Part shown: positions 22,801-57,000 of the stretch, piece by piece
How positions within the stretch are numbered: position 1 is the stretch's first letter
Layout of the letters: every line of letters starts with the position of its first letter
Origin: Ylistrum balloti
Lineage: Eukaryota
NCBI RefSeq assembly: GCF_031769215.1
Contig: NW_026782720.1
Location: 248,001-312,000 of the forward strand
DNA length: 64,000 bases
Direction of reading: 5' to 3'
Program-made: the position numbers and the translations under genes
The notes under the pieces: model-generated
Database searches by the model: none
What the model saw: only the letters and a program-made list of their open reading frames with translations
Told to the model about the DNA's origin: nothing

Positions 22801-23578
22801 GAATTTCGCCTGTATCACAACGGGAACACGTGGAAGGAGGCATTAATTCCACGCGCCATTGTAGGCCCATGTATTAAAGAGTGATGATCAGAAACATTTC
22901 ATTCTTGGTAGTTTGACTCGCAGAGTTATCTGTGATGTCTTATATTACTAATTGCCTTCTTGAAATATAAGCGGAGCTCCATTGCTGGCCATTTTATCAT
23001 ATCTAACCATAATGAAATACTATTTAAGAAGTTGAAGATTCGTCTGGTTTCCATCACCGATTTGCTCTGGTGTTAACATATATATACAATGACCAGGAGT
23101 CCAGCTCATCTAACAAGGTCTGTAACATTTCGGATCGGACACATTCTTCACTTATCATCAGTCTGTACACCAGTTTATTATATACATATATCTTATATTT
23201 ATAAAGATGAGATAAACATTTTCCCAGCCATTCCGCTTCTTTTAAACACTAAGCCTGCTTGATTTCCCTAGCCTGTATGTGTCTGTCGAGATCCTCAATA
23301 CTTAGTGGGATTTGTGTACAAACAACAGCAACGGTGTATATGAAGTATGTCTAAGCGACGTTTGTAACATCAGGAAACAGGGCGACCCACGTTGGTAGGG
23401 TTATGTCCGGATATTGATGTGTATAGTCGACCGTACAGCTGCGGAAACGATGTCTCATTACACACTGTGTAGCTAGTTGACTGCTGCACTGGTTCGCACG
23501 TCCAAACGACACTATTTAACAATCTGTGGTTATTGTACGGCACGATCAGAGGGGTGAAACGTGTGCCACACTGCCAAG

Positions 23579-26500
23579 ATGGCAGACGACAGTGTAGAGG
23601 AAGAGAGGAAGATAAAGGTGACGGCGGTGGGAGACTGTGGGGTGGGGAAAACTTGTCTCCTCATGACTTATGCCACTAACAAATTCCCCGATAGTGACGT
23701 CCCCGGACTTTACGAATGCAGTCAAACTGTAAAAGGTAGGCGCGCGCTTATATTCCTTTTGAAATGAGTGTATTTTTAATATTTGTATTACAGATAAGGA
23801 ACGCAAATAAGTATCAATCATATGTATGCACGCCCAGTGAATAAACAAAAGGTTTCTTTAGAAAATGAATGATACGATGAGTTTTGTGAAACGAATAACG
23901 ACAACAATGCAGAAATCAAAACTTACCAATGAAGGAATGGCACGCTGTGATATCATACTACATGTATAATCACACCCTGTCTACTTCGTTCTAGCCTACA
24001 TGAGAACTGAACACCATACTCTTTTGATTATCATCGTAATGGTTTGTTCTTTAAATCAATTTCTTGAATTGCAGTTTCTTTAGAGGTACAAGGGAAAGTT
24101 ACGTCTTTACAGTTGTTGCAGTGATCAAATCGTGCTCTTCCTGTTTTCATCGCCAATGTTAGGTCTAAGTGTTTTGGGTTTTTTTAACCATTGCCATGTC
24201 CTGTTATTATGTAAAGGCGCGAGGTCATATATTGTCCCCGTAATCAAGGTCACATCTTATTTTCCGTCGTAATCATCAAGGTCACATCTTATTTTCCGTC
24301 GTAATCATCAAGTTCCCATCTTATTTTCTGTCGTAATCATCAAGGTCAAGGTCACATTTTATTTGTTGTTCTGATCTTTAAGGTCATATATATCATTTCC
24401 TTACTTTGTGCATGAAATTTAATTACTATTTCGAACCGGGCATTTCTTTTCTTCATTCAATAAGCCGTCCTGATTTAACCTGTCAAGGTCATGATAAAGG
24501 TCTTGATGGCAATTCTTGTGACCAGGCGGTGCCTTTTTTCGTCGTTTCTAGGATCCTGTTCACGCCAAGCTGTTGCTGTACAAATGACACATGTGGTCTA
24601 TATAAAGCTTTAATTACCGATGAAAATCGTCGTTGCCATGGCAGGGTTGATATGCTTAAACGTAGTTTTCAAGTGCAAAAGCACTTTATTTTGATGGTCA
24701 ATTAGATATGCATGCTACGCACGACACCATTGCTGAGCACACCAGGTCAAACTGCACTCAAATTCCAAATAATGTATTCCGCGGGATAGAAATTATATCA
24801 CAGTAGTCAATGCTAAATATATGTGTGTTTTCCATGTCAAGCGATTTAAAAAAGATGTATTTCCATTCTAGAATAAATGCGTTTTTCTATACTCGAGTGT
24901 CACTAAAATTCACAACTTGATGACCGACTTCCTGTGTTTGACTTCCTGTAATGTACACACAGACCTTCGCCGATCACGCGTACCGTGTGTGCAACGTTAG
25001 TTTCTTAAAATCCATTAACAGTATAGTTGAAGACATATTCATCTAGACTCGGCCCACTTCGTGTCGTATTAGCACTTTAGTTGCCTAAGCAAATCGGTTT
25101 TTAAACATTTTTTTGTTCAATGATATAACACACATACACACTATGTTATTATACAATATGGGGAAATAAGTTTTACACTCGTTATGCTGTCAGTAATATT
25201 TTAGTCTCCTACACAAACTTAATTCGTATAACTTAATAGTAAAAGTTGAGTATCCTACACAACCTCAGTTTATATAAAATAAATAGTAACATTTTAACCC
25301 CCTACACAACCTGTCTGTAAAATTGAATTGTAAAATTTTAACCCCCTACACAACCTGTCTGTAAAATTGAATTGTAAAGTTTTAACCCCCTACACAAACC
25401 CAGTCTGTATAATTACATAGTATCATTTTAGTCCCGTAACCAACCTCAGTCTGTATAATTACATAGTATCATTTTAGTCCCGTAACCAACCTCATTTTGT
25501 ATGATTAAATAGCAGTCAATCAATAGACAACCCCGGTTTTTAATTTTTAGTAATAAATTAAGTTGCCTGGACAATCCATTGTTTGTGTTGTCAGTATCAC
25601 ACTAGTTATCAATACAATCAACTGCGAATTGCAGCATATAGTTTAGAGTTGCCCAGACAACCCAGTTTGTTTTGTTAGAAGTATTTTAGTTATTCAGTTT
25701 CAGTTTTATATAGTTTAACATTATAGTTGCCTTGACAACGCAGTTTGTTTTGTTAGAAGCTTTTTAGTTATTCAGACAGTTGCAGTATTATATAGTTTAA
25801 CATTATAGTTGCCATGACAACTCCAGTATGTATTGTTAGAAGTATTTTTATAACCCAGACAGTTCCAGATTTATATAGTGTAACATTATAGTTGCCTTGA
25901 CAACGCAGTTTGTTTTGTTAGAAGTATTTTAATAATACAGTTCCTGTATTATATATTGTTACATTACAGTTGCCCTGTATGGTTAGAAGCATTTAATTTG
26001 TCGTTAATGTACCTCCCCACCTAGATTTTGACACGTCTATCTTTGTATTTACCTCAGTCACATCCCTGGTTACAAATTGTTGGCATTTAACAGTCGCATG
26101 ATGCGGGTTGATTAAGGTTTTAGCTCTGTTGTATCTAATTCTAAATTTGTATTGAAAGGTGCTATCCGACGGGGTATATGTGTATAATTTATTGTACAGA
26201 CACCAATTAGTCAAACGTTTGTATTGTTGTATCGCTTATAGTTGACTGTTTTATGTCACACTTTGAAGATAGCTCCACAGGACAAAACATAAATCGGATT
26301 AAATGAACATAATGAACGTTGTATAAATCTCTCTCTAATAAAGTTATCTGTCACACTGTACGAGATGATGGTTCGGTCACGTGATTTCCTGTACATATGA
26401 AATCCACATTCTACGACACACACATACACACACATGTACGTACTGATGTACAACGCCTTACCCAGGAAGAAACGTTCATCGATTTTCAGTCATTCAACAT

Positions 26501-29500
26501 ATGATGAACCTATCGTTATTTATCTGTAGTGGACACTGATATATCACGTCCATTAACCTAGCATTCATCATTGCCTGCAGTGGAGAACTTCCTTAAATAT
26601 CACCTCGATACACCTCTTTTGTGACCACGGTAATGGCCACCACCATAAAACTCTTTTGTGATCACGGTAATGGCCACCACCATTAAACTCTTTTGTGATC
26701 ACGGTAATGCCACCACCATTAAACTCTTTTGTGATCACGGTAATGGCCACCACCATTAAACTCTTTGGTGATCACGGTAATGGCCACCACCATTAAACTC
26801 TTTTGTGATCACGGTAATGGCCACCACCATTAAACTCTTTGGTGATCACGGTAATGGCCACCATCATTAAACTCTTTTGTGATCACGGTAATGGCCACCA
26901 CCATTAAACTCTTTTGTGATCACGGTAATGGCCACCATCATAAAACTCTTTTGGTGATCACGGTAATGGCCACCATCATAAAACTCTTTTGGTGATCACG
27001 GTAATGCCACCACCATAAAACTCTTTGGTGATCACGGTAATGGCCACCACCATTAAACTCTTTTGTGATCACGGTAATGGCCACCATCATAAAACTCTTT
27101 TGTGATCACGGTAATGGCCACCACCATTAAACTCTTTTGGTGATCACGGTAATGCCACCACCATAAAACTCTTTGGTGATCACGGTAATGGCCACCACCA
27201 TTAAACTCTTTTGTGATCACGGTAATGGCCACCACCATTAAACTCTTTGGTGATCACGGTAATGGCCACCATCATTAAACTCTTTTGTGATCACGGTAAT
27301 GGCCACCACCATTAAACTCTTTTGTGATCACGGTAATGGCCACCATCATAAAACTCTTTTGGTGATCACGGTAATGGCCACCATCATAAAACTCTTTTGG
27401 TGATCACGGTAATGCCACCACCATAAAACTCTTTGGTGATCACGGTAATGGCCACCACCATTAAACTCTTTTGTGATCACGGTAATGGCCACCATCATAA
27501 AACTCTTTTGTGATCACGGTAATGGCCACCACCATTAAACTCTTTTGGTGATCACGGTAATGCCACCACCATAAAACTCTTTGGTGATCACGGTAATGGC
27601 CACCACCATTAAACTCTTTTGTGATCACGGTAATGGCCACCACCATTAAACTCTTTGGTGATCACGGTAATGGCCACCATCATTAAACTCTTTTGTGATC
27701 ACGGTAATGGCCACCACCATTAAACTCTTTTGTGATCACGGTAATGGCCACCATCATAAAACTCTTTTGGTGATCACGGTAATGGCCACCATCATAAAAC
27801 TCTTTTGGTGATCACGGTAATGCCACCACCATAAAACTCTTTGGTGATCACGGTAATGGCCACCACCATTAAACTCTTTTGTGATCACGGTAATGCCACC
27901 ACCATTAAACTCTTTTGTGATCACGGTAATGGCCACCACCATTAAACTCTTTGGTGATCACGGTAATGGCCACCACCATTAAACTCTTTTGTGATCACGG
28001 TAATGGCCACCACCATTAAACTCTTTGGTGATCACGGTAATGGCCACCACCATTAAACTCTTTTGTGATCACGGTAATGGCCACCACCATTAAACTCTTT
28101 TGTGATCACGGTAATGGCCACCATCATAAAACTCTTTTGGTGATCACGGTAATGGCCACCATCATAAAACTCTTTTGGTGATCACGGTAATGCCACCACC
28201 ATAAAACTCTTTGGTGATCACGGTAATGGCCACCACCATTAAACTCTTTTGTGATCACGGTAATGGCCACCACCATTAAACTCTTTTGGTGATCACGGTA
28301 ATGCCACCACCATAAAACTCTTTGGTGATCACGGTAATGGCCACCACCATAAAACTCTTTTGTGATCACGGTAATGGCCACCACCATTAAACTCTTTTGT
28401 GATCACGGTAATGCCACCACCATTAAACTCTTTTGTGATCACGGTAATGGCCACCACCATTAAACTCTTTGGTGATCACGGTAATGGCCACCGCCATTAA
28501 ACTCTTTGGTGATCACGGTAATGGCCACCACCATTAAACTCTTTGGTGATCACGGTAATGGCCACCACCATTAAACTCTTTTGTGATCACGGTAATGGCC
28601 ACCACCATTAAACTCTTTTGTGATCACGGTAATGGCCACCATCATAAAACTCTTTTGGTGATCACGGTAATGGCCACCATCAAAAAACTCTTTTGGTGAT
28701 CACGGTAATGCCACCACCATAAAACTCTTTCGTGATCACGGTAATGGCCACCACCATTAAACTCTTTTGATCACGGTAATGGCCACCATCATTAAACTCT
28801 TTTGGTGATCACGGTAATGCCACCACCATAAAACTCTTTGGTGATCACGGTAATGGCCACCACCATTAAACTCTTTTGTGATCACGGTAATGGCCACCAT
28901 CATAAAACTCTTTTGTGATCACGGTAATGGCCACCACCATAAAACTCTTTTGTGATCACGGTAATGGCCACCACCATTAAACTCTTTGGTGATCACGGTA
29001 ATGGCCACCACCATTAAACTCTTTTGTGATCACGGTAATGGCCACCATCATAAAACTCTTTTGGTGATCACGGTAATGCCACCACCATAAAACTCTTTGG
29101 TGATCACGGTAATGGCCACCACCATTAAACTCTTTTGTGATCACGGTAATGGCCACCACCATAAAACTCTTTGGTGATCACGGTAATGGCCACCACCATA
29201 AAACTCTTTTGTGATCACGGTAATGAGTATGACTACTTTCCGACGTCTTTTGAGATGGCGGTAATGTTAATGACTACTTTCCGACGTCTTTTGAGATGGC
29301 GGTAATGTTAATGACTACTTTCCGACGTCTTTTGAGATGGCGGTAATGTTAATGACTACTTTCCGACGTCTTTTTAGATGGCGGTAATGTTAATGACTAC
29401 TTTCCGACGTCTTTTGAGATGGCGGTAATGTTAATGACTACTTTCAGACGTCTTTTGAGATGGCGGTAATGAGTATGACTACTTTCCGTCGTGTTTTGAG

Positions 29501-32500
29501 ATGGCGGTAATGTTAATGACTACTTTCCGGCGTCTTTTGAGATGGCGGTAATGTTAATGACTACTTTCCGACGTCTTTTGAGATGGCGGTAATGTTAATG
29601 ACTACTTTCCGACGTCTTTTGAGATGGCGGTAATGTTAATGACTACTTTCCGACGTCTTTTGTGATGGCGGTAATGTTAATGACTACTTTCCGACGTCTT
29701 TTGAGATGGCGGTAATGTTAATGACTACTTTCCGACGTCTTTTGAGATGGCGGTAATGTTAATGACTACTTTCCGACGTCTTTTGAGATGGCGGTAATGT
29801 TAATGACTACTTTCCGACGTCTTTTGAGATGGCGGTAATGTTAATGACTACTTTCCGGCGTCTTTTGAGATGGCGGTAATGTTAATGACTACTTTCCGAC
29901 GTCTTTTGAGATGGCGGTAATGAGTATGACTACTTTCCGTCGTGTTTTGAGATGGCGGTAATGTTAATGACTACTTTCCGACGTCTTTTGAGATGGCGGT
30001 AATGTTAATGACTACTTTCCGACGTCTTTTGAGATGGCGGTAATGTTAATGACTACTTTCCGACGTCTTTTGAGATGGCGGTAATGTTAATGACTACTTT
30101 CCGGCGTCTTTTGAGATGGCGGTAATGTTAATGACTACTTTCCGACGTCTTTTGAGATGGCGGTAATGAGTATGACTACTTTCCGACGTCTTTTGAGATG
30201 GCGGTAATGTTAATGACTACTTTCCGACGTCTTTTGAGATGGCGGTAATGAGTATGACTACTTTCCGACGTCTTTTGAGATGGCGGTAATGTTAATGACT
30301 ACTTTCCGACGTCTTTTGAGATGGCGGTAATGTTAATGACTACTTTCAGACGTCTTTTGAGATGGCGGTAATGAGTTTGACTACTTTCCGACGTCTTTTG
30401 AGATGGCGGTAATGTTAATGACTACTTTCCGACGTCTTTTGAGATGGCGGTAATGTTAATGACTACTTTCCGACGTCTTTTTAGATGGCGGTAATGTTAA
30501 TGACTACTTTCCGACGTCTTTTGAGATGGCGGTAATGTTAATGACTACTTTCCGACGTCTTTTGAGATGGCGGTAATGATTATGACTACTTTCCGACGTG
30601 TTTTGAGATGGCGGTAATGTTAATGACTACTTTCCGACGTCTTTTGAGATGGCGGTAATGAGTATGACTACTTTCCGACGTCTTTTGAGATGGCGGTAAT
30701 GTTAATGACTACTTTCCGACGTCTTTTGAGATGGCGGTAATGCTATTGACTATTTCTTAATATCTTTCGAGGTCATGACGAATGAGCTGGGGAACATTAC
30801 TTTAAGAGAAGACTTTTGTCACCAGCCCTGGTTGCAAAGGGTTCCCCGTATTTTCGTTTTGAGTTATTTTTAGTCAGGCATTACCTATGTCTGACTTTTG
30901 ACATATAGAAGTTTCAGAGCGCTGACTTTTGCTTCACTAAGCAAATCATTTTCCATATTTCAAAGCGGAGGGATAGTGATGGAAAAAGTGTTTTGATTTA
31001 AAGGTAATTGTCATAAATATGCCAAATACTGCATTGAAATCGATTATAGGTAATTTATAAGGTATTTGATCTTGACCTCTTATGATCTATTTATCTACTT
31101 TTGACGCAACTTTACAGTGTTATCCGATGTGCGAATGAACAGTATACTTCATGCCATTCTTGATACTCCAGGGGTTACATTCACTATCGATACTCCAGGG
31201 GTTACGTTCACTATCGATACTCCAGGGGTTACGTTCACTATCGATACTCCAGGGGTTACGTTCACTATCGATACTCCAGGAGTTACGTTCACTATCGATA
31301 CTCCAGGGGTTACGTTCACTATCGATACTCCAGGAGTTACGTTCACTATTGATACTCCAGGAGTTACGTTCACTATCGATACTCCAGGAGTTACGTTCAC
31401 TATCTACACTCCAGGAGTTACGTTCACTATCGATACTCCAGGGGTTACGTTCACTATCGATACTCCAGGGGTTACGTTCACTATCGATACTCCAAGAGTT
31501 ACATTCATTATCGGTACTCCAGGAGTTACGTTCATTATTGATACTCCAGGAGTTACGTTCACTATCGATACTCCAGGAGTTACGTTCACTATCGATACTC
31601 CAGGAGTTACGTTCACTATCGATACTCCAGGAGTTACGTTCACTATCGATACTCCAGGAGTTACGTTCACTATCGATACTCCAGGGGTTACGTTCACTAT
31701 CGATACTCCAGGGGTTACGTTCACTATCGATACTCCAGGGGTTACGTTCACTATCGATACTCCAGGAGTTACGTTCACTATCGATACTCCAGGAGTTACG
31801 TTCACTATTGATACTCCAGGAGTTACGTTCACTATCGATACTCCAGGAGTTACGTTCACTACCGATACTCCAGGAGTTACGTTCATTATCGATACTCCAG
31901 GAGTTACGTTCACTATTGATACTCCAGGAGTTACGTTCACTATCGATACTCCAGGAGTTACGTTCACTATCGATACTCCAGGAGTTACGTTCACTATCGA
32001 TACTCCAGGAGTTACGTTCACTACCGATACTCCAGGAGTTACGTTCACTACCGATACTCCAGGAGTTACGTTCACTATCGATACTTCAGGGGTTACGTTC
32101 ACTATCGATAATCAAGGGGTTACGTTCACTATCGATACTCCAGGGGTTACGTTAACTATCGATATTCCAGGAGTTACGTTCACTATCGATACTCCAGGAG
32201 TTACGTTCACTATTGATACTCCAGGAGTTACGTTCACTACCGATACTCCAGGAGTTACGTTCACTATCTACACTCCAGGAGTTACGTTCACTATCGATAC
32301 TTCAGGGGTTACGTTCACTATCGATAATCAAGGGGTTACGTTCACTATCGATACTCCAGGGGTTACGTTCACTATCGATACTCCAGGAGTTACGTTCACT
32401 ATCGATACTCCAGGAGTTACGTTCACTACCGATACTCCAGGAGTTACGTTCATTATCGATACTCCAGGAGTTACGTTCACTATTGATACTCCAGGAGTTA

Positions 32501-35500
32501 CGTTCACTATCGATACTCCAGGAGTTACGTTCACTATCGATACTCCAGGAGTTACGTTCACTACCGATAATCAAGGGGTTACGTTCACTATCGTATATCT
32601 TGTATAGAATATTCGCAAAACATTCAATAAAAAAACACAAACGATTAAAGAGATGGATGTATTTGTTGTGATTCATTGATCAAACAGCGATGTCCTTTTA
32701 CTATAATTGTTTCCTGTCAGATCAAACTATTCAATGATAATTCCTGACATTTTACTTGAAAATTACATAAAATACCGAGATATCCACTTGAGTTAGGATA
32801 GGATGAGAAAAAAGATGTAAATGAAACAGCTGGTGTGATTTGTGGTGGGCTTGATGTCGTACTACATGGACACTTACTTCCTTCATTGTTCTCACTAAAA
32901 CACTCCCGCACACTCTACTTCTGCCACTTAAACAGTTTCTTCCTCGTTTTTGTCCTATCCTGAATGAAATATTTGTATGTTTCATCATCATCATCATCAA
33001 TGTTAAAACAGCGTCGTCATTTTTCAACACCTGACATTGACATTGACTATTATCATGCCAAACACACCTAATGATGTCAAACACGCCTGTTGACTAATGA
33101 TGTCAAACACGCCTGTTGACTAATGATGTCAAACACGCCTGTTGACAAATGATGCCAAACACGCCTGTTGACAAATGATGTCAAACACGCCTGTTGACTA
33201 ATGATGTCAAACACGCCTGTTGACTAATGATGTCAAACACGCCTGTTGACAAATGATGTCAAACACAGCTGTTGACAAATGATGCCAAACCCGCCTGTTG
33301 ACAAATGATGTCAAACACGCCTGTTGACTAATGATGTCAAACACGCCTGTTGACTAATGATGTCAAACACGCCTGTTGACAAATGATGTCAAACACCCGC
33401 CTGTTGACAAATGATGTCAAACACGCCTGTTGACTAATGATGTCAAACACGCCTGTTGACAAATGATGTCAAACACAGCTGTTGACTAATGATGTCAAAC
33501 ACGCCTGTTGACTAATGATGTCAAACACGCCTGTTGACAAATGATGTCAAACACGCCTGTTGACTAATGATGTCAAACACGCCTGTTGACTAATGATGTC
33601 AAACACGCCTGTTGACAAATGATGTCAAACACGCCTGTTGACAAATGATGTCAAACACACCTGTTGACAAATGATGCCAAACCCGCCTGTTGACAAATGA
33701 TGTCAAACACGCCTGTTGACTAATGATGTCAAACACGCCTGTTGACAAATGATGTCAAACACGCCTGTTGACAAATGATGTCAAACACGCCTGTTAACTA
33801 ATGATGTCAAACACGCCTGTTGACAAATGATGTCAAACACGCCTGTTGACTAATGATGTCAAACACGCCTGTTGACAAATGATGTCAAACACACCTGTTG
33901 ACAAATGATGCCAAACCCGCCTGTTGACAAATGATGTCAAACACGCCTGTTGACTAATGATGTCAAACACGCCTGTTGACTAATGATGCCAAACACACCT
34001 AATGATGTCAAACACGCCTGTTGACAAATGGTGCCAAACACACCTGTGCACAAATGGTGCCAAACACACCTGTTGACAAATGATGCCAAACACACCTGTT
34101 GACTAATGATGCCAAACACACCTAATGATGTCAAACACGTCTGTTGACAAATGGTGCCAAACACACCTGTTGACAAATGGTGCCAAACACACCTGTTGAC
34201 AAATGATGTCAAACACACGCGTTGACTAATGATACCAAACACACCTGTTGACTAATGATGCTAAACACACCTGTTAACTAATTATGCTAAACACGCCTGT
34301 TGACTAAAGATGTTAAACACACCTGTTGACTTAAGATGCCAAACACACCTGTTGACTAAAGATGCCAAACACACCTTTTGACTAATGATGTTAAACACAC
34401 CTGTTGACTAAAGATGCCAAACACACCTGTTGACTAAAGATGCCAAACACACCTTTTGACTAATGTGTCTTCAGTAACACTAAAGGAAGTTGGTATATAT
34501 GAGCCCAAACACTTTTTATCTTCATGACAAAAAGATTAAATATACAGCGCGATCGGTCCAACCTGCCGATAGCCTCTTTGTATATTAAAACGGTTCCTCC
34601 CCCCCCCCAATCGGCCCCCCTCCCCCACCTCCTTGATTGATTGTAGCAATTTACTGTATCATACCAGTTCCAAAACCAACACCATGTAAACAGCCTTCCA
34701 ACTATACTCCAAGAAATAAGACGCTCTGTAAGTCGTATACAAAACTCGGTCTTACTGCGTAAAATGGTTTGATTAACACGTTAAAATGTTTTTGATAAAT
34801 CGATATTCATATTTTATGTTTTCAAACACTTCCTTGTTTATTGATTATTGATAGCGTTAAAAAGATAATGTCACAACAATTCATTGAGATGTTATTTCCC
34901 TGTCTCTATCACTAAATACTCTATCATGAGAGTTACAAACATCCGCCCCTCCTCCCATCAGTTGATAAAACACGTGTAGCGGTGCTGATCATTCAATGAA
35001 ACACAATAATATCTCCTCAATCGCCATTCCTCTCCGGAATATGATATTGCGTGAATTGTTAAGGATCCATACACCGAAATTGGACGAGTATTGTTCAGGA
35101 ATTATTAATGAAATACGGCGAGTGGGCGAGTATTGTAGAGGTACGATTCCTGGAATACGATAAGTGGGCAAATATTGTAAAGGTACGATTCAGGGAAAAC
35201 GGTTAGTGGGCGAGTATTTTAGAGGTACGATTCAGGGAAAACGGTTAGTGGGCGAGTATTGTAGAGGTGCGATTCAGGGAATACGGTTAGTGGGCAAGTA
35301 TTGTAGAGGTGCGATTCAGGGAATACGGTTAGTGGGCGAGTATTGTGGAGGAACGATTCAGGGAATACGGTTAGTGGGCGAGTATTGTGGAGGAACGATT
35401 CGGGGAATACGGTTAGTGGGCGAGTATTGTAAAGGTACGATTCAGGGAATACGGTTAGTGGGCGAGTATTGTAAAGGTACGATTCAGGGAATACGGTTAG

Positions 35501-38500
35501 TAGGCGAGTATTGTGGAGGAACGATTCGGGGAATACGATTACAATTAGTGGGCAAGTATTGTAGAGGTGCGATTCAGGGAATACGGTTAGTGGGCGAGTA
35601 TTGTAGAGGTGCGATTCAGGGAATACGGTTAGTGGGCGAGTATTATAGAGGTACGATTCAGGGAATACGGTTAGTGGGCGAGTATTGTGGAGGTACGATT
35701 CAGGTCGATTGAAACAATGTGTATCACAGATGATCGATTGAAGCAATGAACAATTACGTGCATATAATTTTGATTACTTCCGGACAAAAATAGTTTTTTG
35801 AACTAGAAAAAGTTAAAATGATGTTTTTAATATGGGTGATTGTAATCTTGATTACGTTGACACAACAGATAGCGTTTCGATTAAGAAAGCTGAATTGATG
35901 TGTATGATATGACTTGCTGTCGTAGAATTTCGAGTGTTGTTATGAATACACCCAGTGATTCATTTGTATACATAACGGTGCTGTGTATCGGAAGCAAGCT
36001 TACTCATGTAATCTCTGTACCGGCGGGGAAGAGGTGAAACAATCATTGGCGATGTCGTGTATATCTACAACTCATAACTTTACTATAATAAACCTATGAA
36101 AATTCATCGTACGACAGATTTTAGGAATTTGAACTTTAAATTTTTTTCTGACGAACTAGTCTCCTTGGCGAATTAGCTCATTGTTATGTATAGGTAAAAT
36201 GTGTAATTTCAGTCAGAAATGAATGCGTTTTGAAATTCTAAATGTCGTTTTGAACAAGTTTAACGACTTGCGACTCTGCGCACGATTTCCATGTTTTCTT
36301 GTCTCCTAGTTGACTGGTATAAATGTAGTTGTAAAAGCCACATGTGTAGTATTAGTAAGCCATCACACTTCTCTGTTTTAGATAGTACAATGCTCGACTT
36401 TACATTGGGTTGATAGAAGGGATTATCAACACAATAAAATAAGATATTAAACAAGGCGAAAGTAATTACTGATAAATCCTTGTAACAGAACTTGGACGGT
36501 TGTGTAATTGTACTTTTGTGACCATCCTGGAAAGTATTTTGTGAAAAGTATGTCTAAAGCCAAAATGAAATGATTGAATTTCTCGATGACGATGTAATCG
36601 TTGTGTTTTGTGGTAAGATCTCCTAACAGATTATTTACAATTCCAATCGTAGTTAAAAACAATGTTTCTATTTTGAATTTGCCATTTCTATAAGTAACAA
36701 CAGTGTTTGTCCAGTCCACGGTGTTTTCTTGTCGCCGTTGCTTCTACATTCTAGAGGCTTTTCTTGTGTAATGTAATGTGAATTATGCTCGTTGTTCGTT
36801 CACATACCTGGTTAATTCGTGAACGTGACATCCTTTAGCAACTTGGAATATTCTTTATGCGAGATGTCGCTCACTCTTTTAGAACATGCAAAGGTGTTCC
36901 TGGCAATAGTTTCATCTATACTGGGTGTTTATTCTCTCATTTTTAGCTTACCTGTCCGAAGGGCCAAGTGAGCGGTGTCCGGCATCTGTCAACTTTTACT
37001 AGTCATGAACGACTGAGCGGATTTTAAACAAATTTGGGGAAAGTAAAATCAGATTAATGTAAATGGTAGGCAGGGCCCAACAAGAAAAAAGTTAACCACC
37101 AGATACATTTAGCTCATGTTCACAGCATTGCTTTGCACCATCAACAATCCATCTGGACCTTTGAAACAGTTGCCATCCCCACTGAATGAATATAGCATTG
37201 CCATGCCTGACAAACGGAATTTGAAGCTGTATCTGTGGAGTGAAGATCATCAGGGAAATATTTTCCTACTAAAGAATTTAAAGTTTTGCATTATTGACTT
37301 AAATATCTAGGTGAGCGATACAGACCTTTTGGGTCTCTTGTTCAATGCAAGCATTGGAAAATAAAATTTGTTTTCTTTTTCAGCTGGGCGATCGACCTCA
37401 TTTGAAGTCCCTGTTGAGATGCAATTCAACGGGTGCAAATACAGCATCGGTCTAACGGACACCATCGGATCAGTAAGTATCGTTGAGACACCTGTAAGTA
37501 CCGGAGGCATATCAGTAAATACATTTCCGTGAGACATCAGTAAGTATCGTTGAGACACCTGTAAGTTCCGGAGGTATATCAGTAAATACATTTCCGTGAG
37601 ACATCAGTAAGTATCGTTGAGACACCTGTAAGTTCCGGAGGTATATCAGTAAATACATTTCCGTGAGACATCAGTAAGTATCGTTGAGACACCTGTAAGT
37701 TCCGGAGGTATATCAGTAAATACATTTCTGTGAGACATCAGTAAGTATCGTTGAGACAGCTGTAAGTTCCGGAGGTATATCAGTAGATAAATTTCTGTGA
37801 GACATCAGTAAGTATCGTCGATTTATCAATAAGTAACGTTGAGCTATCAGTAATAAAATTTCCGTGAGACATCAGTAAGTATCGTTGAGACACCTGTAAT
37901 TTCCGGAGGTATATCAGTAGATAAGTTTCTGTGAGACATCAGTAACTTTCGTTGAGACACCTGTAAGTACCGGAGGTATATCAGTAAATACATTCCCGGG
38001 AGACATCAGTAAGTATCGTTGAGACACCTGTAAGTAACGTTGAGTTATCAGTATATATTGGTAAGTATGCACTAAATGCAGCTCTCACATACGTTTGTGT
38101 TGCGAGAAAATGACGTTCAGTTACCCAATTAATTGGAGTCGTCCATTTTTGACACAACGCACACAGTATAGCTAATGGTTTGTTCTTTTCGAAGGATGAG
38201 TACCGGCGGATCCGTGAGCTGTTTACCGTGGGAACAGACATATTCCTAGTGTGTTTTAGTGTGACGGAACCAGACACGCTGAACAATGTCAAACAAAACT
38301 GGCTATCGGAAATCAAAATCCTTGCCCCAAAGGCCACCTTCGTATTAGTCGGTACAAAAACAGACCTTCGAGAGGACGAAAATGTGAAGCAAAAATTAAA
38401 GGAAAAAGACCAAAAAGTAATATCTATTCAAGAAGGAATCAAATGTGCAAAAACCTTCGGAGCAAAAACCTACGTGGAATGTTCAGCATTGAACCAAATT

Positions 38501-38602
38501 GGACTTAAAGAAGTGTTTGAGACCGTTGTGATGGTTACCAGTCCAGAAACCAGCACCCCTCGGAAATCTGGCTCAAATGGTGGACCATGTGTCGTGTCGT
38601 AA
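23579..38602 (+). CDS. Atypical Rho-family small GTPase, 217 aa, RhoU/V-like exon structure, CAAX (CVVS)
   Basis: Exon 1 23579-23735 (G1 GDCGVGKT; donor G|GTAGG), exon 2 37384-37472 (AGRSTSFEVPVEMQFNGCKYSIGLTDTIGS; ttttcag acceptor, GTAAGT donor), exon 3 38195-38602 (DEYRRIR...TDIFLVCFSV...G4 GTKTD, Rho insert, G5 ECSAL, CVVS-stop). Phases 1 and 0 are consistent; total 654 nt. Confidence 0.9.
24240..24366. repeat. ~32-bp tandem repeat x4
   Basis: gtaatcatcaaggtcacatcttattttccgtc units. Confidence 0.8.
25195..25980. repeat. Two old degenerate tandem arrays (~43-bp unit to ~25510, then ~75-bp unit)
   Basis: Recurrent ttttaaccccctacacaacc...tgtaaaattgaat, then agttgcc--gacaac...tgttagaagtattt. 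Confidence 0.6.
26614..29225. repeat. 36-38-bp minisatellite, about 70 copies
   Basis: Unit ctctttt(g)gtgatcacggtaatggccacca(c/t)cat(t/a)aaa. Confidence 0.98.
29226..30742. repeat. 41-bp minisatellite, about 37 copies
   Basis: Unit ggcggtaatgttaatgactactttccgacgtcttttgagat; period 41 (29231 to 29272). Confidence 0.98.
31162..32593. repeat. 27-bp quasi-palindromic minisatellite, about 53 copies
   Basis: Unit gatactccagg(a/g)gttacgttcactatc; no indels, so long ORFs (TPGVTFTID)n and (VTPGVSIVN)n are open on both strands. Confidence 0.98.
33055..34465. repeat. 26-bp minisatellite, about 54 copies, decaying toward the right end
   Basis: Unit aaacacgcctgttgac(t/a)aatgatgtc. Confidence 0.97.
35113..35703. 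repeat. 42-bp minisatellite, about 14 copies
   Basis: Unit gttagtgggcgagtattgtagaggtacgattcagggaatacg. Confidence 0.95.
36940..37342 (+). mobile_element. Short HINE (TTTTAGCTCACCTG-type) just upstream of Rho exon 2
   Basis: 5' ttttagcttacctgtccgaagggccaagtgagc; 3' aggtgagcgatacagaccttttgggtctcttgtt (subterminal inverted repeat plus hairpin plus CTTGTT). Confidence 0.7.
37468..38040. repeat. 67-bp tandem repeat x9 beginning at the Rho exon 2 donor
   Basis: atca|gtaag at 37473, 37540, 37607, 37674, 37741, 37808, 37875, 37942 (gtaact), 38009: an exact +67 period. Confidence 0.93.
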
Positions 38603-38660
38603 CTATGCCAGAATGGTGGGTCATGTGTCGTGTCGTAACTCTGCTGGAATGGCGATCATG
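38576..38660. repeat. 36-bp tandem duplication of the CAAX-stop end of the Rho gene
   Basis: aatggtggaccatgtgtcgtgtcgtaactatgccag / aatggtgggtcatgtgtcgtgtcgtaactctgctgg / aatggcgatcatg. Confidence 0.85.
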
Positions 38661-39559
38661 AGGTAAAAATTTGCCTCGGATTTTAGCACAAACTGGTCTG
38701 GTGCAAAATAAACATAGTTCTTAAATCAATGCATGGCTTTAAAGGAATTCCATGATCTTCAAGAATATGAGAAACACATTTACAGACCACATACACTGGT
38801 GACTTCGGTCATAACGATTTCGTTATGTGGTAGGCCTACTAATGGTCATAATCGCCTAAAAGCGGTTTTTATCGATTAGACATTAAATCCTTACCTATGC
38901 ATCATACGTATTAGGCGGTCTCGAAACAAAACATGGATTCTAGAGAAGGAACCGAGATGAGATCCTGATGTAACAGATATTTGTGTCAGCAGTTTTATCT
39001 ATTTATATATTGGTTTTTGATTATGATTGTAACACTTAGTGAATTTCGAAATATTTTAATATTATGTTTTAGTCAGCGGCTGGTCTGCTGACCTCGTAAT
39101 GTCAATAAATGCCGGACATTCTTCACACTTATTGACCTACCCTATACACATTAACGTGACTAACCGCTGTACTGATGAGAGTAATAGCATTTCTATCAAC
39201 CACTCCCGTGTGTTCATAATTACGAGTGACAATCTTCGTCATTCTCCATTTGAAATTACATTTTTGACAGACATATAAGTTACTGCAGACATTTCTTGAC
39301 AGGTCAAAAAAGAAACAGTCCATGTGAAAATAGGTCTTTATAAAACAGCATTCAACTGTTTGACAATCGGTGATGAAATATGTCTGAGGAGTAAGAAAAA
39401 AGGGTTTTTACTTTTATCTTTTTACCAATAATCTATGATGGCGAACATGGCGCAATTAGTTGAATTTTCTTTCTACTTTATCCCATAAAAGTATCACCGA
39501 CTGAATTAGTATCGTACATCAACCAACCTTTACAAGACCATAGGATCCGAGAATTATTT

Positions 39560-48020: not shown

Positions 48021-51000
48021 TCAAACACTTGGTACTGATATACTAAGTTGCTGGAAACCATGGTTACCTCCAAATGACTGTATAATGTAGGTACTAGTGA
48101 AGGAGTCTTCTGCACCAGTACTGTCTATCTCGACTACGTCCATCGTCTGATCTGATATGTCAGACAGAGCAATACAAGAGGAGTCATGGCCCTGACTTTG
48201 GTCATGCGTTTTCTCCTCTTCTCCCAAGTCAACCAAGAGACACTGGTAGGTATCCCCTTCAGGTCCACATTTCATTGATGTGTTATCTGCCTCCTCTTCC
48301 TCCACATCACTCTCAAAATACAGCAATTTAAGGTCAGAGGAGGTTGATAACGATGTGTCAGATGAGGTCGATGGTGATGAATCAAAACAAGTTTCCTTCA
48401 CTTCATCAGCCTCTGAATTGCCACCAAAATTGTCCTGAAATTTTGTGTTTAAGGAGCACCTTACACTTCTACGTGGGGTTCCATACACAAAATTATCAGA
48501 CAAATCAGATGAATCACTTGTGTCCACTATTTTTTTAGATTTTTTGCGAGGAAAGGTTTTGGGTGTATACACTCTCTTCTTCCTTCTTTCCACACTCTCC
48601 TGTCTCCTCTCTGTGAGAGCTTGTCGTGTACTGAGAGCAGGGCTTGAACCTACAGGCCTACTACTACGTGTAACCAAATGAACTAGGGCATCTGCTTCTT
48701 CATTTAGAGCCTGTCTCGTACTCTGAGCTGGACTAGTGCCAATACTTTGGTTGTTTAACACTGAACACAAAACTTTGTCAGATTTAGACCAATGGCACTC
48801 TGATTCGGTTCTTTCTGACTTGCCATGATTACTTTTCTTTAACATGAATTTCTTGCCTTTGTACTTGATGACCAGGCTTTTCTCATCATTATCGTTCTCC
48901 GTCTCTGACTTATTAAGGAAATTTATGTTATTTTCCACATTTCCTTTCTCTGTTCCAATAACTGTTTGTAATCCTTCTCCTTTAGGACCATTCATTCCTG
49001 TCAACCAATTTGTGATTGACATCTGGCCGGGAGAAATGTTGGACTTTTGGGATTTTTTGCTTTTTGTCTTTTTGGATGTTTTCGGAATATGTTCACTTGG
49101 CTGTCTTTTAACTTGAGCATTTTGAGGTTTTGAGCTTGAGCTCTTGTTTCCACTTTTGTCACATTCTGATTCTGTCCCGCTTGTCAATAAAGCCCGGAGA
49201 AGTCCCTTGCTTTTCACTGCTGTGTTGACTCTGACTGGACTATCATCATCAGACATTTCACTATCTTCAATACAACTACTTGTGCTAGATATGTTCAAGA
49301 TATCATTTTTAGCTACACACTGTTTGTTTGATGAGCCAGACCTGCTTCTGCAAAACTGTCCTTTACTATTTTTAGATCGCATGAAATGCTTAAAAGGAGA
49401 CTTTACATCACTGCTTTCACTTGAGGCCTTTAACTCCATGATAGATTTCTTCTTTGCTGCCCTAGATTTTTTTTTAGAAAAGCAGCCTTTACAATAATTC
49501 CATGGGTTTTGTTTATAGCTCTTTTTCTTAGGAGATATTACCACGCATTTGGATATGGATTTTTTCATTTTTATCTTAGAGTCTGTCCCAATCTTTTCCA
49601 GTCTGAGGGCATCAGCTGTAGTTAGTCCTACAGATCTTGTTCTCTTAAACCCAGTGCGGGCTCTCTTCAATTGTATATCAAGGGCTGACTGCCTGACATT
49701 ACTTTTAACGGGAGAAACTTGGGTTGGTTTAGGGTTGGGAATGGTAGCTGAAGGTTGCAGCCTGCGAGGTGACCTACTTTCTACAGTCTCACCAACAACA
49801 GACAACACATCCTCAGATATCTTTTGTCGTTTCGATGTGGTATTTTTTATACTCTTCTTACGCTTTTTTTGCTGGGACTTTGATGGTTCACCTGTGTCGT
49901 ATTCGTTGGAAGTTGAAGGCTGACAGTCTATTGAATCCACTACATTTAATTCATCATCTGTCTCCTCGTATGACAGACGCAGCACAGTACCTGGTGATAA
50001 AGCACTGGAGGCAGGTGGGGAAGAAAGTGTTGAAGATCTTGCGGGAAGGCTTTTCTTAATCAGTTTATCAGACTTGCCAGGGTATTCACTTTTACATTTA
50101 CTATCCAAATCTACTTTCACATTTTTATTTGATGCATCAGGAGACTGCTCTTTTGTCACAGTTTTCTTCTTTCCTTTAGAAACTGCAAGAATGAAACAAT
50201 AAACTAATTAAGACAAAATAAGAAGTCCTTATTGGACCCTGGCATCCAACCAACATATCCAAAATAACAATAGCCCATATCCTGCATTGCTCATCTGAAT
50301 CTTAAATCCCACCTATGCTTTACATGCCTATAGGTTGGGTATTTTAAATATTTCCAAATTAAAGCTCAGTCACTTAACCCCATTGGTGGGGAAAGACCAA
50401 TAGGTTAATTCTTATATCATTACTGTCTTTCTCTTTTGATTCCCAGTAAGAGTTTTTTATGGTAATCAGGTTAGTATCTCAAATATATCAAATATATAAC
50501 CAAGAAATAATGTCCTTTTGGGCCAGGTGAGCTAAAAAGAAATCATATCAAAGGATAAATTTTGTCTCTTCAAAATACCATTTTCTATCTCACATCCTAG
50601 TATTTAGTCGTTTACATTAAGATACAATCAAAGTCTTTTCTTGGGGAATAAATCTTAAATATTGAACTTTTGTAGTGCTGGTCCAAGTGAGGGAGTTCCA
50701 TGTTACTATTTCAGTCGAACTGTGGGTAGTGTGCAAATCACACACACACATATATATATGCTGAAGAACTTACTTTTCATTTCAACAGTCTTACAATCTT
50801 GGCAGACATTGTCCCTGCCAACCTTGGACAGACTGTGACAACCTACATGTGATCCCTGTGATCCACACCAGCTACATACGATGATCTCCCACTTCCTATA
50901 AACAAAAAATTAGCAGAAAATGAATAATTGATTCACAAGAAATTCACTTAGTTCTTAAGTCAAGGCAACATTCAGAAAATTAAGTCAGATAGCACCTATG

Positions 51001-54000: not shown

Positions 54001-57000
54001 GCCCTTTTTGTTCGAAAACTTGAAGTGGCTTCCCATGGAGATGCTTTGTGCCAACTTTGGTCAAAATCCATCCAATGGTTCTTGAGAAGAAGTCATTTAA
54101 GGAAGGTTTTTACATATGGCCCCTTTTACACCCCTTATGGACCCCAAAGGGGACATAATCACTTTTTTCAACATAATTTCATATGTCCTTCACTAAGGGA
54201 TGCTGTCTACCAAATTTGGTTGAAATCGGTCAAAGTTGAATTTTTTACCCTTTTGAGCGCCCCCCTAGTGGGGCCGTTTTTGACCCAATTTTTTTTTCAT
54301 TCGCAAACTTTGTAGACCTTGCCATAAGGACTCTAAATATCAAGTATGAACTTAATCTGACTGTTGGTTCATGAGAAGAAGATTTTTAAAGATTTACCTA
54401 GTTTTACCCCCTTTTCCCCCCTCCTGGGGCCCCTATTGGGGTCATGCCCTTTTTCTTCGCAAACTTGAAGCGGCTTGCCATGGGGATGCTTTGTGCCAAG
54501 TTTGGTCAAAATCCATTCTGTGGTTCTTGAGAAGAAGTCGAATACGTGAAAAGTTAACGACGCATGACGACAGACAAATCATGATGGCAATAGGTCACCA
54601 TGAGCCTTCGGCTCAGGTGACCTAAAAACTGAAGCTGAAGGAGGAGATATATGGAGAACATAGAACAGTTAAAAAACAAAGACCCATAACTCTTGCAAAA
54701 ACACAATGCTATTAATAAAACACCATTTCACGGTTAAAAAGTTTACGGAGTTTCAGATAAATTGCTGAGAAACTGAGGAAAAAGATTACCATACAAAAAT
54801 GAAATATTTTATCATTTAACAAATTAAAAATTTTCCATCACTTAAGTTGATGTTTGTGAATACCAACCGAAATACAGGATCTGTGGAACCAGGAATTATG
54901 ACAGCAAGGAGCTCGCAGAGTTTCATTGGATGCTCTTGTCTCTACAGATGTCATGCAGATAGCACAGGTTGTGTTGGCAGTACCATAGAATGCTAGGCGG
55001 TCACTGACAGACACCATCTGTCGAGGCCTATGATCCTCACAAAACGATCTGTTACATAAAGTATTATGCTATATCAATTTCTTATCCATAAGTCTGAGAT
55101 ATTTATCACAATCGAGAATACACAAGAATTATGTTACTGTTACGTTTTACTCTTCATACTTTATCATCAATTCATTTAAAGCTACATGCGATGTCAAAAG
55201 AAAAATATACATGCATATCATTTTTACCTGAAAGAGTCATAGTACTGGTGCATTGTACCACTAGTTTTTCCACATCCAAAGTGGAAGACACGTCGACAAG
55301 CTCCAACTACGCAGCCGATAGTTGCACCCTTTTGTTTACAGTATGTACAGCGCTGAACAGAAACAAATACGAAAATGATGACTATAGTATGGAAATCATC
55401 AATGTATTTAGTATATTTGTTTTCTGAACCAGAAGATAATTGTAATGAAATGAAGTCCTCTACAAGTTTTCAGATGTATGCTGTCTACTCATATTTCTTT
55501 TGTCAGCAGATTTCTTATGTTGACCGTCAAGGATTTCCTCCCATAAATCTTACAATGCTTAATTTTGCATTACACGTTCCTCTAGAAAGGTAGAATCAAC
55601 TATACTACTCATAATTTGATAGGGATCACACCTAATAATTAGCAAAATTTTCTTTTAAAATAAAATAATATGTATTCCTTATATTTGTTGGTTTATATCT
55701 GTACCGAGGTCTATGTGTATCGGGTGTTTATGTGGTCAGTCACCTGTAACGCCTACACTTCACGTGTACACGCACGAGCCTCCTACGTGCAGATTGTCAT
55801 CAATACGTTTGTGGCAGAATATTTCGCTTCTTGCTTTACATTTTGAATTTTAATGGTTTGAAAATGCCCCAACAGCAGGCAAGAAGACGTCTAAGCACTT
55901 CAGATATGGACAGGGGCATTGGTATGATCCAGTCTGGTAGGTCACAAAGGGAGGTGGCCAATGACCTTGGTGTGTCCCAGAATGTTGTGTCTCATATGTG
56001 GAATCGTTACCAAAATTATGGAACTGTCTCCAAAAGACATGGTGGGGGTAGGGAATGACTTACCTCGCAGCATCAAGACCGCTACCTTGTTATTGCAGCT
56101 CGACGTCAAAGGTTCATCAACGCTACATCACTACGTAATGACTTCTAGAATGCCACGGGAACTCGTATCTCCACACAAACTGTGAGAAATAGACTTCATG
56201 ATGCTGGTTTAAGGTCGCGCAGACCTGCTGTGAGAATTCCTTTGCATTACGACATGTTCAAGCTAGACTTGCTTGGGTTTGTGATCATGTGAATTGGAAC
56301 CTCCATGACTGGTCCCCCGTACTTTTTTACAGACGAGTCTAGATTTTGCTTAGATTTCACTGACCGACGTGCCAGGGTGTGGCGACTACCAAATGAGAGG
56401 TTCCGTGCCGCTAACGTTTCCCAACATGACCGATACCGTGGTGGATCTGTTATGGTTTGGGGTGGCATTAGCATGCAAGGCAAGACCGACTTTCATGTGT
56501 TCCTTAATGGCAGTTTGACTGCACAGAGGTACTGTGACGAAGTCCTGGACGTGTACGTCAGGCCTTATGCTGGTGCTATAGGTCCGGAATTCATTCTTAT
56601 GGATGATAATGCGCGACCACACAGAGCTCGTGTGACTGAACAGTATCTGGAAAGGGAAACAATTGAGAGGATGGACTGGCCAACCCGATCTCCAGATATC
56701 AATCCTATAGAACATGTGTGGGACATGCTTCAGAACGCTGTTTCGGCGAGAAACATCCAACCTAGAACGCTTCAGGAACTTCAAGCAGCTCTCGTCCCTG
56801 AATGGACAAGTATTCCCCAAAACCAGATATGAGACTTAATCAGAAGCATGCGCCGCCGCTGCCACAGCGTAATTGATGTTCGAGGACGTTATACTCGATA
56901 CTAACACTGTATTTTTCGCTGAACGAAACTGTTTCATAGGACTTAATTGTTCGCCCCTCTTGTCGTAATTTGTGATTTTCGGGGTATCTGTGTACAATGA

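Follow-up and report, generated by a model that had tools for sequence, protein, structure and literature searches.

A family of atypical Rho proteins in bivalves and abalone, predicted to be GTPase-deficient, traced from a three-exon gene of Ylistrum balloti

What kind of Rho protein is encoded by a gene whose product has other residues at the equivalents of Cdc42 positions 12, 59, and 61 and an extra loop after its effector region, from which Rho type did it arise, and can that product still hydrolyse guanosine triphosphate (GTP)? These questions are raised by a gene on the + strand of a 64,000-nucleotide (nt) stretch of the Ylistrum balloti genome (contig NW_026782720.1, positions 248,001 to 312,000), to which we refer as the window. 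An earlier note on this DNA had described the gene as an independent, lineage-specific, GTPase-deficient Rho with a RhoU/V-like C-terminal half. We found that it is almost certainly a genuine member of a distinct and conserved family of atypical Rho proteins. It is reasonably likely to be the Ylistrum orthologue of a mollusc-restricted subfamily that is predicted to be GTPase-deficient and that came from the Cdc42/TC10 group.

Joined via consensus GT/AG sites, the three exons form a 654-nt open reading frame (ORF) of 217 codons (coordinates in Table 1). The spliced 217-amino-acid product that the earlier note had assembled by hand is 100% identical to the RefSeq protein XP_060082871.1, "cdc42 homolog [Ylistrum balloti]", and the NCBI gene model is the same as that hand-built exon model. 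All of the motifs quoted in the note (GDCGVGKT, DTIGS, TKTD, CSAL, the Rho insert, and CVVS) are present on the + strand where it had located them. The exon 1 donor (AAAAG/GTAGGC) is in phase 1 and the exon 2 donor (ATCA/GTAAGT) in phase 0. Pfam Ras (PF00071) matches exon 1 (3.5e-6) and exon 3 (E = 1.2e-21), and a Pfam search with exon 2 alone gave no match. The Rho insert aligns without gaps with the inserts of Cdc42, Rac, and RhoG and is modelled as a helix at residues 144-152. The encoded protein shows the marks of the Rho family: a Ras-like G domain (motifs G1-G5), an insert helix between G4 and G5, and a CAAX box.

To describe which residues are kept, we aligned 25 bivalve members of the family and used Cdc42 numbering throughout. 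Fourteen positions (G10, D11, G15, K16, T17, P29, D57, T58, G60, Y64, R68, K116, D118, and S158) are invariant in all 25, and F28 (F or Y), T115, and A159 are nearly so. Position 12 is S in 20 members and C in the other five, which are the scallops, and is never Gly; position 59 is I in 22 and V in three, never Ala; position 61 is T in 12, S in five, L in three, E in three, and G in two, never Q. The replacement of all three positions, which the earlier note had read from one protein, is found in every aligned member. Y32 is replaced by D, E, G, N, or S and never by an aromatic residue, with Asp in Ylistrum, in agreement with the loss of this tyrosine claimed before. T35 is replaced by S (15 members), G (five), E (three), or Q (two), and Y40 by S and others. 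F56 is T in 25 of 25, S71 is F in all, D65 is changed to R, and Y72 and P73 are lost. The Ylistrum equivalents are Cys20 (12), Asp40 (32), Gly43 (35), Ser48 (40), Ile80 (59), and Ser82 (61). The CAAX box reads C-x-x-S in all 25 bivalve members, with Cys214 and Ser217 invariant; by standard rules, such a box specifies farnesylation.

In Cdc42-CRIB complexes, the Y32/T35/Y40 region and strand beta2 form the surface that binds the Cdc42/Rac-interactive binding (CRIB) motif. Judged from the alignment, the family has neither Y32, T35, and Y40 nor the uninterrupted switch I-beta2 junction by which Cdc42/TC10 proteins would be recognized by such effectors. It likewise lacks the canonical catalytic residues of the Cdc42/TC10 subfamily (G12, A59, and Q61). 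Substitutions at the equivalents of RhoA Gly14, Ala61, and Gln63 are the accepted cause of the failure of Rnd to hydrolyse GTP (PMC6696182). The residues for intrinsic and for arginine-finger-assisted hydrolysis have all been lost, and the nucleotide-binding core (GxxxxGKT, F28, DTxG, TKxD, CSA) is intact, together with the Rho insert helix and the CxxS box. The strongest internal argument comes from position 61 itself: because it varies freely while the rest of the protein is nearly frozen, it would appear to catalyse nothing any more. From these residues and from the analogy with Rnd, we consider the deficiency in hydrolysis itself probable.

In comparison with Cdc42, TC10, and the Tc10-like protein of the same genome, the window protein carries 13 extra residues, located between Cdc42 positions 41 and 42. 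HMMER (against TC10 and Cdc42) and MAFFT both aligned VPGLYE with VPTVFD and placed the gap afterwards. Since these alignments and the exon structure agree, the T35 equivalent is Gly43 and not the Thr of RSTSFE. The earlier note had reported 13-14 extra residues in switch I; the length stands, but the residues follow the effector loop instead of lying inside it.

The origin of the loop can be approached by comparing exons. In the Tc10-like gene (contig C328), exon 1 ends with ...VPTVFDNYA plus one base, intron 1 is in phase 1, exon 2 has 59 nt for 20 residues ending in DTAGQ, and intron 2 is in phase 0. In the window gene, exon 1 ends with ...VPGLYECSQTVK plus one base, the two introns have the same phases, and exon 2 has 89 nt for 30 residues ending in DTIGS. 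According to this comparison, the extra residues flank the conserved phase-1 intron, about 3 codons standing before it and exactly 10 (AGRSTSFEVP) after it. Exon 2 is 89 nt long in all four species mapped (Ylistrum, Haliotis, Pinctada, and Mercenaria) and 59 nt in the Ylistrum Tc10-like and RhoU genes, and the position of intron 1 is common to the Tc10-like and RhoU paralogues and to the orthologues in Haliotis, Pinctada, and Mercenaria. Such a pattern would be left either by splice-site shifts into the intron or by a small insertion at the boundary. A tandem duplication of the FDNYAVTV segment was also considered and rejected: LYE...TV and SFEVPV resemble this segment too faintly for a test, and neither of the boundaries predicted for the copies coincides with the intron. 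In an AlphaFold2 model (mean predicted local distance difference test score, pLDDT, of 83), residues 46-57 loop out with pLDDT below 50, strand beta2 spans residues 61-67, and the rest has the standard Rho fold; Foldseek matched the model to Cdc42, TC10, and Rac structures with a template modeling score of about 0.9. The family insert was seen in no other protein among the more than 400 retrieved, in a search that did not directly reach other mollusc classes.

When exon 3 and the whole protein were used as queries in word-index searches, orthologues were recovered from eight bivalve orders: Pectinida (Mizuhopecten, Pecten, Argopecten), Arcida (Tegillarca), Mytilida (Mytilus), Pteriida (Pinctada), Ostreida (Saccostrea), Unionida (Sinanodonta), Venerida (Mercenaria and Mactra), and Myida (Dreissena and Mya). 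A hidden Markov model (HMM) built from the 25 members was then run exhaustively against 1.84 billion representative proteins. On per-domain rescoring, 29 full-length members scored 314-378 bits and the best canonical Rho (Cdc42) 197 bits, and the interval between held only last-exon fragments of members. The tree within the family roughly tracks bivalve systematics, with pteriomorphs set against unionids plus heterodonts, which would fit inheritance by vertical descent.

The family appears to be undescribed. A survey of bivalve Rho genes listed nine Rho types for scallops (Li et al. 2015, PMC4669188); the signature strings of the family are absent from its sequence tables, and its PyRnd and CfTc10 are clearly different proteins. 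The same gene types were given for the oyster Crassostrea gigas in a 2020 review (PMC7600811). Our literature search found no paper describing the family and no searchable paper containing the scallop protein accessions, and a search of the ESM Atlas yielded nothing more specific than generic Rho clusters. The sequence itself is already in RefSeq, but the family would be new, as would its range and the exon that marks it. Of the 146 best representative hits, 49 have a non-canonical residue at position 12 or 61, so such residues are fairly common, and atypical Rho proteins are already known as a kind; this family is set apart by its age, its conservation, and its intron-flanking loop.

Spliced transcripts of relatives were found in four runs, as contigs of 1.8-2.1 kb coding for P0001, a protein cluster that includes the 217-amino-acid Argopecten irradians RefSeq protein. 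Aligned with the window, the contigs fall into three blocks, with boundaries at exactly 23735/37384 and 37472/38195; at the exon 1 donor, they stop matching exactly at 23735. One further pectinid transcript of the gene was found, and the orthologues of many other bivalves are coded by intronless contigs of about 1-2 kb. Because the transcript contigs share the exact junctions of the window gene, the splice form that makes the unusual loop is a real mRNA in these relatives. A second Ylistrum DNA data set differed from the window at 12 sites, all in intron 2 or downstream of the stop codon, and at none of the 497 coding bases covered.

Selection was measured as the ratio of non-synonymous to synonymous divergence (dN/dS) by the Nei-Gojobori method, with dS near saturation, so that the ratios are rough. 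Over the whole coding sequence, Ylistrum and the Argopecten transcript gave dN 0.024 and dS 1.20 (ratio 0.020), and two other pectinid pairs gave 0.024-0.029, dS being no lower than 1.2 in any of the pairs. Across the 27 codons of the effector loop and the insert, Ylistrum and Argopecten differ by 10 synonymous and 0 non-synonymous changes. Neutral evolution, which the earlier note had named as a way for its proposal to fail, is excluded for the pectinid pairs (dN/dS 0.02-0.03), and purifying selection is very strong.

Among the weaker profile hits were proteins of four abalone species (221-222 amino acids; XP_067680623.1 of Haliotis asinina and its orthologues). The Haliotis protein has S at position 12 (GDSQVGKT), T at 56, and L at both 59 and 61 (FTDTLGL), and a 9-residue insert at the same place, starting with Ala-Gly. 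Its gene has three coding exons: exon 1 covers residues 1-52, a phase-1 intron splits the codon of Ala53, exon 2 has 89 nt for exactly 30 residues and is followed by a phase-0 intron, and exon 3 begins with Asp83. Identity to the bivalve family is only about 37%, and the tail is CVIL, not CxxS. Since Haliotis has the 89-nt exon 2, S12, and L61 and joins the bivalve family as a clade at 99/94, we conclude from these comparisons that exon 2 had gained its 30 nt, and G12 and Q61 had been lost, before bivalves and gastropods split. The term "lineage-specific" used before is therefore too narrow for a gene found in eight bivalve orders and in Haliotis.

We next asked from which Rho type the family came. 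When the whole protein was ranked against PDB, TC10 scored 148.5 bits, Cdc42 about 145, and Rac1 about 136; exon 3 alone gave TC10 103, Cdc42 100-102, and Rac1 96-98 bits. The 60 best PDB matches of exon 3 included no RhoU or Rnd chain, those of the whole protein likewise no Rnd chain, and the resemblance of the C-terminal half to RhoU/V proposed earlier was thus not borne out. In maximum likelihood (ML) trees (LG+C20+F+G4; RhoH not included), all members of the family form one clade (100/100), with a long stem (1.42 substitutions per site), nested in the Cdc42/TC10/Tc10-like clade with support of 81-89. RhoU stands apart in a clade of its own (100/100). The intron in phase 0 before DE(Y/F), which had been taken as RhoU-like, is common to RhoU, the Tc10-like gene, a Mig-like paralogue, and one other paralogue. 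Ylistrum RhoU has the same phase-1 intron, the same phase-0 intron, and a 59-nt exon 2. In Cdc42 proper and in the RhoA-like genes, the exons are divided differently in this region. The shared intron structure thus points to a source of the three-exon Tc10-like/RhoU type, and the sequence then favours Tc10-like.

TC10 (RhoQ-RhoJ) and the invertebrate Tc10-like proteins (PyTc10/CfTc10 of Li et al. 2015) are the best match of the family, with the whole protein as well as with the C-terminal half, and are grouped with it in the ML trees. The Tc10-like genes and the family alike have three coding exons, with a phase-1 intron at the border of switch I and beta2 and a phase-0 intron right after G3, and share the LM(S/T)YATNKFP stretch, the Rho insert, and a CAAX box. 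Unlike the family, Tc10-like proteins retain G12, A59, Q61, Y32, T35, Y40, and F56, have the 59-nt exon 2 and no loop, and end in CVIL (geranylgeranyl type) after a polybasic run, whereas the family ends in CxxS. A protein of the representative library, P0222 (GDACVGKT, DTSGL, no insert, CVIL tail), groups at 99/95 with scallop and snail Tc10-like proteins and was retained among the Tc10-like entries of the final tree; by its motifs, it is read as a second atypical derivative of the Tc10-like lineage. Three long-branch atypical Rho proteins (P0290, P0214, and P0286) were drawn beside the family when added to the tree; this is probably long-branch attraction, as all lack the insert, and they were left out of the final tree.

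Other Rho genes of the Ylistrum genome were noted in passing. Three tandem RhoA-like last exons lie within 9 kb (C247:1423425-1432514, L006-L008), each an intact ORF with a CAAX box; a single Rho gene was reported for scallops by Li et al. 2015 (PMC4669188). The contig that carries RhoU also holds at least six divergent Rho-like hits within about 100 kb (C101:1097207-1194795), 28-44% identical to the Tc10-like query, which may be a lineage-specific expansion of small GTPases.

We propose the following course of events. A three-exon Rho gene of the Tc10-like/RhoU structural type would have given rise to the family before the split of bivalves and vetigastropods, the founding change being the addition of 30 nt to exon 2 where it meets the conserved phase-1 intron. 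In bivalves, a further 3-6 codons at the end of exon 1 would have brought the loop between the effector loop and strand beta2 to 13-16 residues. The protein would bind GTP and be unable to hydrolyse it, alone or with an arginine-finger Rho GTPase-activating protein (RhoGAP), and would thus be constitutively GTP-loaded. A farnesyl anchor would take it to membranes, endomembranes being as likely as the plasma membrane because in scallops the tail is hardly polybasic and lacks a second Cys. In place of the CRIB-binding face there would be the conserved loop and the altered switch II, so that partners other than CRIB effectors are expected. As with Rnd and RhoH, output would depend on abundance or modification. 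RhoH, which likewise has neither Gly12 nor Gln61, is regarded as always GTP-bound (PMC11569159), and is, unlike the family, reported to be vertebrate-specific (Li et al. 2015, PMC4669188). The proposal as a whole, namely an ancient (by estimate Cambrian) mollusc Rho subfamily that is permanently GTP-loaded and farnesylated, with an effector face rebuilt by the 30-nt exon lengthening (an AG-x-x-x-S-F-E-V-P loop in bivalves) and with mollusc-specific partners instead of CRIB/PAK-type effectors, is put forward tentatively, as a possibility that falls somewhat short of being probable.

Several points weigh against this reading, and they are considered here together with its rivals. A search of sequencing runs found no RNA for Ylistrum itself: the single run with the sequence was the genomic DNA data set described above, its contigs being continuous through intron 2. 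The presumed mollusc-restricted range is drawn from bivalves and Haliotis. The placement with Cdc42/TC10 has only moderate support (81-89) and involves a long branch. When the family was forced together with RhoU, the tree was 10.2 log-likelihood units (lnL) worse, a borderline rejection by the approximately unbiased (AU) test (p = 0.0499), and that the rejection is so marginal counts for the version of the earlier note, in which the gene is an independent and narrowly lineage-specific offshoot related to RhoU/V. RhoU also has both intron positions and phases and belongs to the atypical class, but the Tc10-like gene has the same introns, TC10, Cdc42, and Rac rank above RhoU in the PDB searches, the ML trees part RhoU from the family, and the family ranges over Bivalvia and Haliotis. 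RhoU retains G12, A59, and Q61, and its GTP-bound state is attributed to fast exchange (PMC6696182); its N terminus is extended by a long stretch, and its long basic tail closes with CCFM in Ylistrum and CCFL in Pecten. The window protein, unlike RhoU/V, has only 10 residues before strand beta1, with no proline and thus no proline-rich extension, and ends in CVVS and not in a CCFV-type tail. We regard this offshoot as improbable. A mollusc Rnd orthologue or close derivative is more improbable still, hardly to be credited. Rnd1-3 (RhoE) share with the family the 12/59/61 substitutions, the farnesyl-type CAAX box, and a predicted constitutive GTP-bound state (PMC6696182 for Rnd), scallop Rnd also has Cys at position 12 (GDCGCGKT), and forcing the family, Haliotis, and Rnd together cost 11.2 lnL and was not rejected by the AU test (p = 0.123), both branches being long. 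On the other side, Rnd proteins are RhoA-related, have N- and C-terminal extensions, and lack the switch I/beta2 insert, Rnd chains are absent from the top 60 PDB matches, and the Ylistrum genome has a separate Rnd gene. A pattern search for the Rnd motif W-D-T-S-G-D-S-G-Y-D gave no match, as an intron splits the motif, and a P-loop pattern then located this gene on contig C85; rebuilt, it has five coding exons with introns at other sites and sits with RhoA across a 100/97 branch of the ML tree. The claim that the window gene is not a described Rnd holds on these grounds and by the different sequence of PyRnd, and its resemblance to Rnd is, as far as the sequences tell, functional and not one of orthology.

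The other points concern the nucleotide cycle. GTPase deficiency is argued by analogy for every member of the family, Glu61 occurs in three of the 25, and Thr61, the state of Rap, occurs in 12, so that a dedicated GAP is conceivable. For Rap, the catalytic residue is contributed by the GAP that inactivates it. The main rival is an arrangement of this kind, a slow but genuine switch in which a dedicated GAP would act in trans and the protein would cycle; free variation at position 61 is equally compatible with catalysis in trans, and Y64 and R68 of switch II are under strong purifying selection. Rap1, which shares Thr61 with about half of the family members, is otherwise of a different family, retains G12, T35, and Y32, and has no Rho insert; its likeness bears on the dedicated-GAP rival alone. 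Moreover, Ser or Cys at 12 and the bulky Ile or Val at 59 coincide with the absence of T35 and Y32, no candidate for such a GAP emerged, and the same triple substitution is that of hydrolysis-dead Rnd (PMC6696182), which leaves the Rap-like switch unlikely in our view. Finally, Ser or Gly at the T35 equivalent puts the sensing of Mg2+ and the gamma-phosphate in question. As this sensor is lost in scallops (Gly43) together with Y32, and as the model places a low-confidence, probably flexible loop beside the nucleotide site, the protein might be a pseudo-GTPase that serves as a nucleotide-independent constitutive scaffold. The divergence across the family is taken as more than 500 million years, and the nucleotide-contacting motifs (GKT, F28, DTxG, TKxD, CSA) are invariant or nearly so, which is hard to explain unless nucleotide is bound; with G1, G4, and G5 frozen in this way, we consider a pseudo-GTPase quite improbable. 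The reading that we prefer remains a GTP-binding, hydrolysis-deficient Rho from the Cdc42/TC10 group.

The introns of the gene are rich in repeats, and further features were noted around it (Table 1). Minisatellite arrays make up about 60% of the 13.6-kb intron 1 and give rise to long spurious ORFs. As the tandem array of intron 2 begins 4 nt upstream of the exon 2 donor, each of its units has a donor-like ATCAGTAAGT copy; in five transcript contigs of related scallops, only the canonical junction was seen. At the 3' end, a tandem duplication has doubled the last eight codons and the stop codon, and the second copy, in the same frame, is silent because it is located after the stop. Farther downstream, an unbroken ORF with a Ser/Lys-rich low-complexity product may belong, as one large exon, to an adjacent gene that would code for a disordered nuclear protein, and an ORF with a transposase domain is probably the remnant of a DNA transposon.

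Table 1. Coordinates of the Rho gene, its motifs, and other features in the window (UTR, untranslated region)
Feature	Positions	Strand	Details
5' UTR (minimum extent)	23461..23578	+	adjoins coding exon 1; Argopecten-like transcript contigs L001-L004 collinear from 23461-23524 to exon 1 donor
Coding exon 1	23579..23735	+	Met1-Lys52 and first base of codon 53; P-loop and effector loop FPDSDVPGLYE
P-loop/G1 GDCGVGKT	23630-23653	+	motif read in window
FPDSD	23684-23698	+	motif read in window
Intron 1	23736..37383	+	13,648 nt, phase 1, acceptor TTTCAG
Minisatellite, intron 1	26614-29225		37 bp x 70.6; among five largest
Minisatellite, intron 1	29205-30756		41 bp x 37.9; among five largest
Spurious ORF (example)	31117-32607		arises from intron 1 minisatellite arrays
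Minisatellite, intron 1	31162-32593		27 bp x 53; among five largest
Minisatellite, intron 1	33068-34469		26 bp x 54.4; among five largest
Minisatellite, intron 1	35112-35704		42 bp x 14; among five largest
Coding exon 2	37384..37472	+	89 nt; Ala53-Ser82; strands beta2-beta3 and G3 DTIGS
Family-specific 30-nt extension, exon 2 5' end	37384..37413	+	codes AGRSTSFEVP, core of loop between switch I and strand beta2
GRSTSFE	37386-37406	+	motif read in window
G3 DTIGS	37458-37472	+	motif read in window
Tandem array, intron 2	37469-38035		67 bp x 8.5; 78% of intron 2; begins 4 nt upstream of exon 2 donor
Intron 2	37473..38194	+	722 nt, phase 0, acceptor CGAAG, ends directly before Asp-Glu-Tyr (DEY)
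Coding exon 3	38195..38602	+	Asp83-Ser217 and stop; switch II DEYRRIRELF, G4, Rho insert, G5, CAAX
G4 TKTD	38354-38365	+	motif read in window
G5 CSAL	38480-38491	+	motif read in window
36-nt tandem duplication	38576-38647		31/36 identical; NGGPCVVS-stop, then NGGSCVVS-stop in 3' UTR
CAAX box CVVS	38588-38599	+	motif read in window; predicted prenylation site
3' UTR (minimum extent)	38603..39120	+	relatives' transcripts align to 38618, again at 39030-39120
712-codon ORF	48021-50159	-	unbroken; no Pfam match
ORF with DDE_3 transposase domain	56305-56832	+	E = 2.5e-16

Most of what is known of hydrolysis-dead atypical Rho proteins (Rnd, RhoH, RhoBTB) comes from vertebrates, and they are looked upon as a handful of exceptions. 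The family described here would add an independently derived atypical Rho, predicted to be hydrolysis-dead, that is under very strong purifying selection across bivalves and has an orthologue in abalone. It would be a tenth small Rho type beside the nine published for scallops and oysters, for which the RefSeq label "cdc42 homolog" is uninformative and functionally misleading. The gene illustrates clearly how a loop in a protein can be formed at the border of an intron, and offers a natural test of which switch residues are dispensable while nucleotide binding is kept. Its product is a candidate regulator for mollusc-specific cell biology and, if the proposal is true, would represent a clade-specific branch of Rho signalling that the published catalogue of bivalve Rho genes has missed.

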